Source: Bugula neritina
Taxonomy: Eukaryota; Animalia; Bryozoa
Length of the DNA: 64,000 bases
Assembly (NCBI GenBank): GCA_964035545.1
Contig: OZ037770.1
Coordinates: forward strand, 8,252,973 to 8,316,972
Reading direction: 5' to 3'
The translations under genes and the position numbers were made by a program. The notes beneath the pieces were generated by a model, which made no database searches, was not told the origin of the DNA, and saw only the letters and a program-made list of their open reading frames with translations. Position 1 is the first letter of the stretch; each line of letters starts with the position of its first letter. This document shows positions 5,490-62,666 of the stretch, one piece after another.

Positions 5490-8400
5490 TCACACTTTAT
5501 CAGAATGTTGGTTGTTCTCATCATTTTCATACAGGCGAGTAGAGGTTCCCTCTCCCTGCCCGTCTATGACAGAGGTCAAGGTGATTTCATCTGGACCTTC
5601 GTACTTAAAGGCTTGGTCCATGGTTCTGAACTCACCAACTACTGGTTGCTTGTCCACAGGAAATGACTGCTTGAGGTCTGAGGGAGGGTCAGCACGGAAA
5701 GGCTGCTCGTACTCGGCTAGCAAGTCCACAAGATCTGGTCCCATATACTCCGCAGGCAAACTTGTTGGTCTTCCATCCAGAGAGTTGAAGTCCATAAGCT
5801 GGTCGTCATACTCAGGTTCATTCTCTGGTGGTGGTGAGCTGCTAGCAGTGAGCTTTTCATACTGGTGTTGAGGAGTGGAACCATGTGGTTTCTCATAAAC
5901 CAAAGAAGGAATGATATCAGGTATCCGTTCATACAAGTGATCAGCTGCGGTGGGAAACCCATTCTCCGTCACTTCCTTTACACAGTCATGGATGTATCTG
6001 TACTGCTCCTGTATTCGTCAATTACAACAAACAAATTTGCACATGGTATAGTGACTGATGAAAGCAAGAATTATGTTTTGTATATCACATTTATTAAATA
6101 ATAATCATAAGTGAGGGAATCATAAGGAGTTCGAAAGTGCCATTGGTAATTGCTGCATGTATGCCATTGATAGAATCACCTGAACTGAATTGAAAAAGCA
6201 AACGTTTGGCAACAGATCTTGCAGCTATAACAAAAATTTTAAAGTTGAATCTCAAAATCTAAGAATAGAAAAATATTAACATTCAATTCTTTAACATAAT
6301 AACAAGTTTCAAGAAATATCTTAAGATTTTAGAAAGTTTCAACAAATAATCATGCATTCTAAAATGATTTAAACTCATTGAACGGTTAAAATATAACTTG
6401 GTATATTTTTTTAGGAAGATGACCATAAATACAGAAACAAACACAAGATAAGTTTTTGTTCTATAAGCTACTCTTAGCGGTCACGTTTAAATCATTTTAC
6501 CTAGCGGTGGATCTTCCACACAACATATTCAAATGTGTCTCGATTTCCACTTATAAGACTATGGTTCAGCTGTGTGTTGATGATAAAACCAGATAGCCTA
6601 CCCCTGTCTGAACCATTCTACACCTGTACTCTTTCATCTCCATCACCAGGTTGAATATGTCTATCTCACCATGATCTTGAATACGTTGAAGAAGTCTATC
6701 AACAGCTATGTACAAGCCAGTATGACCAACACCAGCACTGTCAAACATTGTATACACCAGATCAATAGAGAACTGTCTAGAAGCATTAGATCATCTGCAG
6801 TGTAAAAGTATAGCACATAGAGTGTTACCTGCAGTGTATAAGTATACCAGATAAAATGTTACCTGCAGTGTACGAGGATAGGGGAAGAACTTCCATCTAA
6901 CGTTTGACTTCTCACTGCCATCACAAACTCTAGCAGAGCCTGTGGTTTTGATGGACATCCAGAGCTAGGCCAGAATGTTGAAGAAACGTGTTTGATAGTT
7001 TGTATTTTTTTACCCTGGGAGCACAAAAACTGCAGATATAAAGTCGGATAAGGACCAATAAAATTGTTCTTTCGTTTATAGGTAGCTTCACAGCATTTGA
7101 TAATAAGTGCTAGCCAGCAACTTATAGCAGAGAATTTCCAGTTTGATGAACATGCTCCATTTGACAACATACATAGACCAAAAACCGCGGCGTGTGGGTT
7201 ATAGCTTAAAATATTACCATGTAATATGTGTAAACATGTTTCTATAAAAACTGCATAGGTCAAATGCATATAGTATGCAGGTCAGAGTAAGAGAGCATAC
7301 CATTTGAATGTCAAATATTCTGATGGTGAATTCTGGAAGAACAGATTCAGCTCTCTTAGTTACAACTAAGTCACCATATGCTGCAGGTTCCTCTAGGGTG
7401 TCTGGCCAGTACTGTTCACACTGCTTTCTTCCTGCAACATAAACAATTGTTAGCAATTTACCTCTCGCTATAAGTTAACATACTTACATCTCTCCATAAT
7501 TCAATATACTTACCTCTCTCTATAACTTAACATACTCACCTCTCTCTATAAGTTAATATACTTACCTCTCTCTATAAGTTAATATACTTACCTCTCTCTA
7601 TAAGTTAATATACTTACCTCTTTTTATAAGTTAACATACTTACATCTATCTATAATTTAATATACTTACCTCTCTCTATAAGTTAACATACTTACCTCTC
7701 TCTATTAGTCAATATACTTACCGCTCTGTATAAGTTATTATACTTACCTCTCTCTATAAGTTAATATACTTACCTCTTTCTATAAGATAATATACTTACC
7801 TCTCTCTATAAGTTAATATACTTACCTCCCTCTATAAGTTAATATACTTACCTCTCTCTATAAGGTAATATACTTACCTCTCTCTATAAGTTAACATACT
7901 TACCTCTCTCTATAAGTTAACATACTTACCTCTCTCTATAAGTTGAGTCAACATAACTATCATGGTGACATTCTGTTCCCAAATCATTCTCCAGAAATGG
8001 TCAATAGTTCCTGGTAGAGGACCCTGAGTAGCAATGTATGTTTCTGTTGAGGCTTTACCCTGTCATAAATATAAATAACTGCAGAGTCTCAATATTCTGA
8101 GATTAGAATTAAGAGGCCTGTGTATAAAGTGCACAATTGAATAAGTAAAATAATTAAAACTTGTATACTTGTATGATGTCCAGATAATTACTAATTACGT
8201 AAGTATAAATCTATGTTAACAATTTAATTAGGAATTGTTTGAAATTCAGAATTACATGCATGGCTATTAAACATGCAAACACCAGAGGAAACTCATAATA
8301 TCTCACAGGAATGAAGTTAGCATTGATGTAGTCTCCCTCTTCCTTGTTAGATGTTAGCTTCACTCTGGAGTGATCAACTAGAAACATGAGCAAATGCGTA

Positions 8401-62100: not shown

Positions 62101-62666
62101 CTGGTGTGGAAGGTACATTATTACTGCTTACAGTTACAGTAAATATGTACGTTTTTCCAGGAGTCAAGTTATTTATAGTGACAGAACTACCACTTCCACG
62201 AGGTACATCTTTCACAGAAGGAGGGGAACATGGAGAGCTACATTTAACTTCTACTCTTACAGAATCCCACACAGTGTTAGGATTACTCCATGTTATAATA
62301 GCAGTGTTTGTACTACCAGGTTGGGATAACTCTGCTGTTACACTAGTCACAGCGGAAGAAGCTACAAAATGAAAAAACTCTTAACATGAATATTAGAGTC
62401 AAAAGCTATATTTGCAATAAAATATAATATTCAGTTGTAATATCATCTTATAGAGCCAAACAAAATTCTGTGTATTGCACACAGAAAGTTACCTAATTTA
62501 ACTGTGTCAAATTCCACCCATCCACTCTGTACAGAACCAGAAGCAATGTTCACATAAGCTTGTATAGAGACAGTATAGTCCTGTCCTGGAGTAACATCTT
62601 GCAGAGTGTGGGTTCTCACTGTGTTATCTGGAATATCTAGAGGGGAGTTCCTATCACCACACGACC
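41178..62666 (-). CDS. R3-subtype receptor-type tyrosine phosphatase-like protein, copy 2 (5'-incomplete; probable pseudophosphatase)
   Basis: Colinear paralog of copy 1 from ~40630 upward. Cassette exons, 5' to 3': B2 62493-62666; A 62077-62361, 59737-60027, 58099-58383; B 57793-57912 + 56159-56332; A 55737-56027; B 55058-55177 + 54543-54716; A 54117-54401; B 53213-53332 + 52697-52870. Then the same C-G FN3, TM and PTP exons; last exon 41178-41696. All cassette lengths are multiples of 3. Confidence 0.88.
42488..42666 (-). repeat. 32-34-bp exon-end/splice-donor repeat (copy 2, ~6 units)
   Basis: TATACACTGCAG|GTAAC-type units; true donor at 42656, further units at ~42622, 42590, 42558, 42524 and a degenerate one at ~42491. 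Confidence 0.9.
43258..43513 (-). repeat. 26-bp exon-end/splice-donor minisatellite (copy 2, ~10 units)
   Basis: Same unit as 7456-7944. Confidence 0.95.
44238..44488. mobile_element. Right half of the foldback MITE (left arm deleted)
   Basis: Matches 8837-9099; sequence corresponding to ~8500-8836 is missing. Confidence 0.8.
61143..61510 (-). mobile_element. Two tRNA-like SINE heads (~61143-61235 and ~61418-61510) separated by a compound trinucleotide microsatellite
   Basis: Minus strand CAGTGGTCCCGTGGT(T/G)TAATGGTT...GGTTC(G/A)A twice; CTG/CCG/CCA/CTA run at 61325-61381; absent from the homologous introns. Confidence 0.55.
61527..61870. mobile_element. PIF/Harbinger-like MITE, 344 bp
   Basis: taa|ACCTAGGGCCACAC...ATGTGGCCCAAGGC|taa; ~70-bp imperfect TIR containing TTTTCGCATGCGAAAA; empty site in the homologous intron near 24300. 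Confidence 0.8.

Follow-up and report, generated by a model that had tools for sequence, protein, structure and literature searches.

Tandem R3-type receptor phosphatases of Bugula neritina with altered catalytic loops and a multi-tyrosine tail: a candidate family of receptor pseudophosphatases

The 64,000-nucleotide stretch of Bugula neritina DNA analyzed here (the window; C6:8252973-8316972 of a 216-Mb assembly, C6 coordinates below referring to that contig) carries two adjacent minus-strand paralogues, gene 1 (~32186 to 5490) and gene 2 (from 41178 past the window end), which encode R3-type receptor protein tyrosine phosphatases (RPTPs) whose phosphotyrosine (pTyr) recognition loop reads KNRT and whose general-acid loop reads WPS. 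They belong to a tandem family of such copies, the WPS genes, that lies beside a canonical R3 phosphatase gene. On balance we favor the view that the WPS proteins are crippled R3 receptors that act as substrate traps or scaffolds, with an expanded pTyr docking tail, alongside or against the product of the canonical neighbor. Each gene would specify a signal peptide, a mucin-like tip, about 14 fibronectin type III (FN3) domains (a variable array plus six constant domains), one transmembrane (TM) helix, one protein tyrosine phosphatase (PTP) domain and a tail. The PTP domain retains its fold, its nucleophilic Cys and, in most copies, the P-loop Arg, while KNRT and WPS replace key residues, and the resulting proteins would probably act as phospho-dependent scaffolds or substrate traps. 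The phosphorylated tail would recruit SH2 proteins via YEEIP, YxxP motifs and a terminal YEN, and the WPS genes would exchange ectodomain, TM and core PTP exons with the canonical gene by gene conversion. The structure of the genes, their motifs and copy number, selection, splicing and the mosaic are shown directly by the analysis, and we infer the tail phosphorylation, the SH2 docking and the interplay with the canonical gene from sequence.

One line of evidence for this view is the loss of catalytic determinants across the family. All eight WPS copies have KNRT, have GK instead of GY and keep the catalytic Cys. The WPD position reads WPS in seven of them and FSLS in copy C; the P-loop Arg is kept in six, being His in gene 1 and Cys in copy C, and the Q-loop Gln is kept in seven. 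Gene 1 thus combines KNRT and WPSSGCP with the P-loop AGVGHTG and the Q-loop MVQTG-EQY, and gene 2 combines KNRT and WPSSECP with AGVGRTG and MVRT; HMMER alignments place Ser at the general-acid Asp position and, in gene 1, His at the P-loop Arg position. Asp and Tyr are therefore lost from all copies and Arg from two, with Cys retained, so that neither of the features that mark an active classical PTP, the WPD Asp and the KNRY aromatic residue, is present in any copy. The sequence-only reading had described degenerate PTP motifs in both genes. The degeneration is real and its KNRY and WPD components are common to the two, but gene 2 keeps the P-loop Arg; the predicted loss of catalytic determinants extends to the whole family, with KNRT and a replaced WPD Asp in all eight copies. 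Window exons were searched singly, and all whole-domain analyses were made on the public NCBI model P0001, a hypothetical protein of B. neritina (assembly GCA_010799875.2). Among 18 aligned R3-like invertebrate proteins, P0001 alone lacks the WPD Asp, and the 17 others keep an aromatic residue after KNR. Loss of the pTyr-loop Tyr removes the substrate's stacking partner, replacement of the WPD Asp lowers PTP1B activity by orders of magnitude, and both changes together are typical of the D2 domains that have negligible activity (Barr et al. 2009, PMC2638020). With both the pTyr-loop aromatic and the general-acid Asp gone, the WPS proteins have most likely ceased to turn over phosphotyrosine, and we infer that domains of the WPS type have lost catalytic activity. 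The D2 domains of LAR, RPTP-alpha and RPTP-epsilon resemble them in keeping Cys and Arg while replacing the KNRY Tyr and the WPD Asp, and the best PDB match of the WPS exon is the RPTP-epsilon D2 domain. Unlike a D2 domain, however, the Bugula domain is the receptor's sole PTP, with no active D1 in cis, and is of the R3 rather than the D2 lineage.

By architecture and PTP match, the proteins are R3-type receptor phosphatases. R3 members are characterized by an FN3-only ectodomain, phase 1-1 FN3 exons, one PTP domain and a YxN motif in the tail (Chicote et al. 2017, PMC5336234). Apart from a putative Thr-rich, mucin-like tip, the ectodomain consists of FN3 alone by Pfam, which found no domain family besides fn3 in the ectodomain exons. 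There is one set of Y_phosphatase exons (profile positions 5-229) and one TM exon, and the C-terminal YxN is LYENDE in six full-length copies and IYENA in the canonical neighbor. The R3 grouping of the PTP domain was judged from PDB score ranking. The best single-domain matches of P0001 residues 1-178 are all R3: PTPRB (168 bits), PTPRO (152 bits), mouse VE-PTP (152 bits), PTPRQ (150 bits), PTPRJ (150 bits) and Ptp10D (147 bits), with the best non-R3 single-domain match at 135 bits or less. Exon-by-exon PDB searches were uninformative on R3 versus tandem-domain RPTPs because two-domain chains sum their scores. The named invertebrate relatives of P0001 are likewise PTPRO-, PTPRB- or Ptp10D-like. 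The R3 affinity proposed from the sequence was thus upheld by the FN3-only ectodomain, the single PTP domain, the PDB matches and the C-terminal YEN. Like PTPRB/VE-PTP, PTPRJ/DEP-1, PTPRO, PTPRH and Ptp10D, the Bugula proteins have FN3-only ectodomains, mostly encoded by phase 1-1 exons, cross the membrane once, and carry one PTP domain and a C-terminal YxN. They differ from these RPTPs in lacking the pTyr-loop aromatic and the WPD Asp, in a tail grown from ~45 to 159 residues with eight Tyr, and in an eight-fold tandem expansion in a lophotrochozoan; R3 expansion in protostomes has been described as limited to flies (PMC5336234). WPD variants have been reported only in PTPRQ and some deuterostome proteins, those without tail tyrosines (PMC5336234). 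As in Bugula, PTPRQ and the variant R3 proteins of Ciona, acorn worm and sea urchin carry a modified loop (WPE, WPQ, WSV, WPI, WVD or WTD; PMC5336234), but those proteins have no predicted tail Tyr motifs, whereas Bugula keeps YxN and multiplies its tail tyrosines. The Bugula WPS variant arose independently of the deuterostome WPD variants.

Past helix alpha-6, the tail comprises 159 residues, with 32-33 Asp plus Glu, 11 Lys plus Arg, 18-19 Pro and eight Tyr. The tyrosines stand in the motifs YE[E/Q/R]IP, YEKP, YE[K/R]L, YDDQL, YMGP, YEQP, YEGP and a terminal YEND. The first aligns with the (I/V)YxN of canonical R3 proteins, and a second YEN lies at the new C-terminus. AlphaFold confidence (pLDDT) is ~90 in the PTP core and below 50 in the tail, which is accordingly predicted to be disordered. 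The acidic, multi-tyrosine tail of ~170 residues that the first reading described stands in its acidity and its multiple tyrosines; its length is corrected to 159. Copies B and D have a 44-residue deletion in the tail and copy H one of 10 residues. Outside Bugula, a phmmer search with the tail against 1.8 billion representative proteins recovered no relative of the subfamily tail; it returned only three Bugula fragments and two weak low-complexity matches. Among public proteins, P0001 comes closest, with 82% identity to the gene 1 tail.

Single-exon searches of the whole genome found eight minus-strand copies and one canonical plus-strand gene, all nine within 410 kb of one 16-Mb contig, the eight copies spanning 325 kb. 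What had been read as a family of two is thus a tandem family, as proposed, but one of eight plus one members. The tails of the eight lie at C6:8020k, 8036k, 8086k, 8140k, 8178k, 8258k (gene 1), 8294k (gene 2) and 8343k. Open tail, WPS, P-loop, KQC and KNRT exons were found in all eight, and six of the eight genomic copies of the KNRT exon are 100% identical at the protein level. Copy C is the most degenerate member (FSLSFGCP, AGVGCTG), yet all its exons are open; ~10.5 kb is inserted between its KQC and WPD-loop exons (C6:8087.3k-8097.8k). The ninth gene lies head-to-head with the cluster on the plus strand (~C6 8405.7k-8429.9k) and is a canonical R3 phosphatase with WPD, KNRW, QTEDQY and a short tail ending in IYENA. 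Protein P0006 of Watersipora subatra is its orthologue. This gene has two tandem WPD-loop exons of 158 and 152 nt with equal phases (C6:8427730-8428572, plus strand, loci L017/L054). Both encode WPD, yet they are only ~35% alike. Inclusion of both would shift the frame, and the exons therefore look mutually exclusive.

Within the window, gene 1 positions 4947-19440 and gene 2 positions 40628-52878 are colinear at 87-97% nucleotide identity, introns included. This stretch encodes the tail, the PTP domain, the TM segment and the six constant FN3 domains. Upstream of it, the two genes use the same FN3 cassette types in different order and number. The comparison bears out the proposal of two adjacent paralogues that share the C-G FN3, TM and PTP exons and differ in their N-terminal FN3 arrays. 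In the Pfam search, five window exons matched parts of Y_phosphatase and the ectodomain exons matched fn3; splice sites of the gene 1 intracellular exons were read off the sequence itself. The features of the two genes, all on the minus strand, are as follows.

5490-6008, minus strand: gene 1 last exon, with the end of the PTP domain (Q-loop EQY, helix alpha-6), the 159-residue tail and the stop codon at 5490-5492 (acceptor read; RNA-like contigs)
6602-6737, minus strand: gene 1 P-loop exon, (HC)S-AGVGHTG ... MVQTG, Arg replaced by His (RNA contigs at 6604-6740; PDB alignment)
6863-7014, minus strand: gene 1 WPD-loop exon, FWPSSGCP ... ILVHC, general-acid Asp replaced by Ser (RNA-like joint)
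7301-7431, minus strand: gene 1 KQC exon, ending FDIQM (sequence, Pfam, RNA-like contigs)
7930-8059, minus strand: gene 1 GY exon, ending MLTQLIER, with GK for the canonical GY (sequence reading)
8307-8377, minus strand: gene 1 DHS exon, (F)DHSRVKL ... DYINANFIP (sequence, Pfam)
9435-9525, minus strand: gene 1 pTyr-recognition-loop exon, KNRT in place of KNRY (sequence reading)
9741-9855, minus strand: gene 1 juxtamembrane exon
10157-10327, minus strand: gene 1 TM exon: final part of the last FN3 domain, TM helix and stop-transfer RRQQRTK
10400-19250, minus strand: gene 1 constant ectodomain, ~six FN3 domains, mostly of two exons each, colinear with gene 2 46100-52700
19259-31033, minus strand: gene 1 variable FN3 array, in 5'-to-3' order X, A, B, A, A, A, A, A*, B
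31695-32186, minus strand: gene 1 putative 5' end, from open reading frame (ORF) readings alone
~32094-32183, minus strand: gene 1 candidate signal-peptide exon (ORF reading)
~31695-32060, minus strand: gene 1 putative Thr-rich, mucin-like exon (ORF reading)
41178-41696, minus strand: gene 2 tail exon (tblastn)
42301-42432, minus strand: gene 2 P-loop exon, AGVGRTG and MVRT (tblastn)
42659-42808, minus strand: gene 2 WPS exon, WPSSECP (tblastn)
43103-43231, minus strand: gene 2 KQC exon (tblastn)
43500-43625, minus strand: gene 2 GY exon (tblastn)
43876-43944, minus strand: gene 2 DHS exon (tblastn)
44825-44914, minus strand: gene 2 KNRT exon (tblastn)
45127-45243, minus strand: gene 2 juxtamembrane exon (tblastn)
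45852-64000, minus strand: gene 2 TM exon, constant FN3 domains and the part of the variable array in the window (B2, A, A, A, B, A, B, A, B)

Gene 2 had been taken to end at 62666. It extends ~13-15 kb past the window end, with an A exon at 8328.9k and its N-terminal X FN3 exon at C6:8330055, ~13 kb beyond the window, which refutes the earlier boundary. The intron after the GY exon (window 7432-7944 and 43260-43513; C6 ~8426.7k-8426.9k in the canonical gene) is made up of 26-bp tandem repeats, each unit reproducing the 3' end of the GY exon together with its GT donor (LIERGK-gtaagt). All copies compared have this repeat, the canonical gene included, and its serial cryptic donors could influence splicing. 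Shorter intronic tandem repeats occupy 10539-10851, 15905-16265 and 31037-31408, and intergenic ones between the two genes (35916-36260 and 37055-38323) give spurious ORFs of up to 422 residues (NSTYSYSH-type). The window is AT-rich animal DNA, with 33-37% GC outside a GC-rich retroelement. Just downstream of the gene 1 3' end, a 1445-residue open frame of 55% GC (12-4349, plus strand) is the pol of a Ty3/gypsy-type retrotransposon, with RVT_1, RNase H, integrase zinc-finger and core, and Tf2-type SH3 domains. A 353-residue reverse-transcriptase-like ORF (13265-14326, plus strand), a fragment of a non-LTR LINE element, lies inside a gene 1 intron; the 1.8-kb insertion that holds it (13231-15034) is confined to gene 1 and absent from gene 2.

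The relation of the WPS genes to their canonical neighbor is that of a mosaic. In blastn comparisons, the two are ~90% identical, introns included, in four blocks: a membrane-proximal FN3 exon with flanking intron, the repeat-rich intron with the TM exon, the stretch from the GY to the KQC exon, and the P-loop exon. The same comparisons found no similarity in the block of the juxtamembrane, KNR and DHS exons, around the WPD exon or in the tail. Protein identity is 95% for the constant G-type FN3 exon and 89% for the N-terminal X exon, and the nearest pair of A cassettes between the canonical and WPS genes differs at 2.7% of sites. The GY, KQC and P-loop exons differ at a proportion of synonymous sites (pS) of 0.14-0.29, the DHS and WPD exons at a saturated 0.69-0.77. 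Saturation in these two exons makes the WPS lineage old. That the other blocks look young is best accounted for by gene conversion sparing the exons that carry KNRT, WPS and the tail; alternatively, the juxtamembrane/KNR/DHS, WPD and tail blocks could be of ancient chimeric origin. Under either history, the two signaling types stay distinct. Neither the canonical gene nor the mosaic figured in the sequence-only reading, and both alter the evolutionary picture.

The mosaic invites comparison with the KIR, SIRP and Ly49 paired receptors, in which, as in Bugula, near-identical neighboring ectodomains kept alike by gene conversion are joined to different signaling ends. In Bugula, however, the contrast lies between an active PTP and an inactive-looking PTP with a Tyr tail, rather than between an ITIM and an adaptor-coupled tail. 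The nine genes might form a novel kind of paired-receptor system in which one ectodomain type is attached either to an active R3 phosphatase or to a dead fold with an eight-Tyr docking tail. Such pairing could let one external cue drive opposite phosphotyrosine outputs, and selection would keep the KNRT, WPS and tail exons from homogenization while the rest is exchanged. We put this forward tentatively, as an idea whose chances are well short of even.

Selection has acted differently on the parts of the intracellular region. Pooled over seven copies, the ratio of nonsynonymous to synonymous change (omega or pN/pS) is 0.30 for the whole PTP domain, 0.19 for the juxtamembrane, KNRT and DHS exons, 0.57 for the WPS exon and 0.52 for the tail. 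Three independent pairs give an omega of 0.32 for the PTP domain (P = 2.6e-7). Purifying selection acts on the PTP exons, and the tail is weakly constrained.

Transcription was assessed by comparison with RNA-like reads over window positions 4800-7457, a range set so as to avoid the 26-bp tandem repeat, and read support concerns the exon junctions within it. Contigs from the RNA-like runs X8 and X9 cover only 5024-6010, 6604-6740, 6863-7015 and 7300-7429, leaving the introns uncovered. One contig, 275 nt long with 130 nt on one side, spans the joint from 7013 to 7300, whose GT..AG lies on the minus strand, and other contigs join the gene 1 last exon to the P-loop exon. P0001, as an independent NCBI gene model, joins LIERG/RKQC, DIQM/GKT, VHC/S/AGVG and MVQTE/EQY exactly as predicted. 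The bridging contig cannot derive from the canonical gene, to which the WPS exon is not similar at the nucleotide level. The expectation of transcripts was thus confirmed for the family, in the form of spliced RNA-like contigs.

Several observations weigh against a crippled receptor that signals through its tail. The RNA contigs match gene 1 at ~90-95% identity and have 24 of the 40 listed variants in common with gene 2; transcription is therefore shown for the family and not for genes 1 and 2 specifically. The tail motifs, among them the Src-type YEEIP and the Grb2-type terminal YEN, are candidate ligands of Src-, Crk- or Grb2-type SH2 domains by published consensus motifs. The tail tyrosines are no better conserved than other tail residues (7/8 versus 73.5%, P = 0.33), and tail omega in three independent pairs is 0.59, only marginally below 1 (P = 0.06). 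Gene 1 combines its Arg-to-His change with a frameshifted cassette and a P-loop exon whose omega is at least 1 against some copies, and it may be a decaying or relaxing member. The catalytic Cys is moreover kept in all eight copies and the P-loop is canonical in six, and residual or altered activity is possible, for example on phosphoinositides as in the WPE-bearing PTPRQ.

This last point leads to the rival that survives best, namely that the WPS domain is still an enzyme, shifted from phosphotyrosine to phosphoinositides or other phospho-substrates. A pocket made shallower by Thr for Tyr, together with a missing general acid, would shift the substrate, as in PTPRQ with its WPE loop; R3 proteins with an altered WPD are known, and PTPRQ is a phosphoinositide phosphatase (PMC5336234; PMC2638020). 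Conservation of the Cys (8/8), P-loop Arg (6/8) and Q-loop Gln (7/8), as well as the strong purifying selection on the PTP exons with a KNRT exon 100% identical in six copies, would also be expected of an enzyme. PTPRQ, however, keeps an acidic Glu, whereas Ser cannot serve as a general acid, and the two copies without Arg still have open frames. The double change of KNRY and WPD is the signature of D2 domains with negligible activity (PMC2638020), and the deuterostome R3 proteins with WPD variants are without tail Tyr motifs (PMC5336234), which the Bugula family expands. We consider a retained but redirected enzyme unlikely.

The sequence-only reading had favored an immune, allorecognition or adhesion role with a diversified ectodomain. 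Diversification by exon modules is indeed found, in that symmetric phase 1-1 FN3 cassettes differ in number and order between genes. The A cassette is a single phase 1-1 FN3 exon of 285-297 nt and the B cassette comprises two exons. Gene 1 has the array X, A, B, A, A, A, A, A*, B, followed by six constant FN3 domains, and the part of gene 2 in the window has B2, A, A, A, B, A, B, A, B, followed by the same constant region. The genome holds 43 copies of the A cassette, all within the cluster and some with stops, such as the in-frame stop of the cassette at C6:8223.9k. The A* cassette of gene 1 (20580-20886, minus strand) has a 2-nt insertion at ~20680, in an A-run, relative to a 96%-identical neighbor, which shifts its frame; it is either a pseudo-exon that needs skipping or a homopolymer assembly error. 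No match to the A cassette or the X FN3 exon was found at copies A and C (C6:8020k-8036k, 8086k-8140k), whose distal ectodomains may differ.

Sequence divergence among these modules is slight. A cassettes are 90-97% identical to each other, many nearest pairs link different genes, the canonical gene included, and between genes the N-terminal X FN3 exons share 86-91% identity. Positive selection on the cassettes was considered and not upheld: an all-pairs dN/dS of 1.46 for the ten A cassettes of the window fell to an omega of 1.07 (confidence interval [CI] 0.67-1.88), not different from 1, when 16 phylogenetically independent nearest pairs from 32 cassettes were used. Neither sequence hypervariability nor omega above 1 was found in the candidate ligand-binding domains (cassettes and X exon). 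The array variation is one of module number and order, that is, of length, and not of binding-surface sequence, and it fits equally well with tuning of ectodomain size. Because the cassettes are near-identical and vary in number and order, they are a poor fit to a hypervariable recognition system.

A role as a diversified non-self, allorecognition or adhesion receptor system, in which ectodomain variation gives specificity, concerns function rather than mechanism and so overlaps with the crippled-receptor reading. It draws on the tandem, lineage-restricted cluster to which the 43 A cassettes are confined, on arrays that differ between paralogues, on a cassette omega near 1 that is far above the PTP value, on the few contigs from other samples that match gene 1 at 99% or more, and on the colonial habit of B. 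neritina. Against this, the near-identity of the cassettes leaves paralogues that differ mainly in length and order, the CI around 1.07 gives no support for omega above 1, the N-terminal FN3 exons of different genes are still 86-91% identical, and the weak match of other samples may stem from cryptic species instead of polymorphism. The immune, allorecognition or adhesion reading is therefore not supported, and we judge it quite unlikely.

Least probable by far is that genes 1 and 2 are neutrally decaying pseudogenes, haplotypes left uncollapsed or an artifact of assembly. Gene 1 invites the suspicion by its Arg-to-His change, the 2-nt cassette insertion (which sits in an A-run and may be a sequencing error), its intronic LINE fragment and its P-loop exon omega of at least 1 against some copies, as does copy C by FSLS, GCTG and its 10.5-kb intron insertion. 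A PTP omega of 0.32 (P = 2.6e-7), open frames in every checked exon of 8/8 copies and spliced RNA-like contigs speak against decay. Haplotypes or an artifact are contradicted by the spread of the eight copies over 325 kb of a 16-Mb contig, by their unlike arrays and intron contents, and by a family member in a second assembly. This explanation is largely refuted for the whole family, whose PTP domain is kept under selection and is not that of a pseudogene. Absence of transcripts, neutral decay across all exons and uncollapsed haplotypes, which the first reading had named as fatal to its proposal, are contradicted for the family.

A precedent for a crippled receptor as scaffold or substrate trap is PTPRU, a receptor pseudophosphatase that binds substrates of its active paralogue, for which competition or scaffolding has been proposed (PMC7320164). 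Like the Bugula copies, PTPRU is a receptor with an inactive or inactive-looking membrane-proximal PTP domain. It differs in being inactivated by structural rearrangements and not by loss of the WPD Asp, in its MAM-Ig-FN3 ectodomain and two PTP domains, and in having neither a multi-Tyr tail nor a tandem expansion.

Receptor pseudophosphatases are, to our knowledge, few and mostly vertebrate, comprising PTPRU, IA-2 and the D2 domains, and our literature searches found no description of the WPS family in Bugula. What is new here is that the only PTP domain of an R3 receptor has independently taken on the D2-type inactive signature, while the tail tyrosines multiplied and the gene underwent an eight-fold expansion beside an active relative. 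The juxtaposition of saturated and homogenized exons within one gene shows which parts selection keeps apart and points to the key residues. If the pairing of active and dead receptors proved false, the cluster would still illustrate clearly how a receptor family can vary the length of its exon-cassette arrays and become a mosaic through gene conversion. If the pairing is true, it would extend the logic of paired receptors to lophotrochozoans, with the enzyme built into the receptor.

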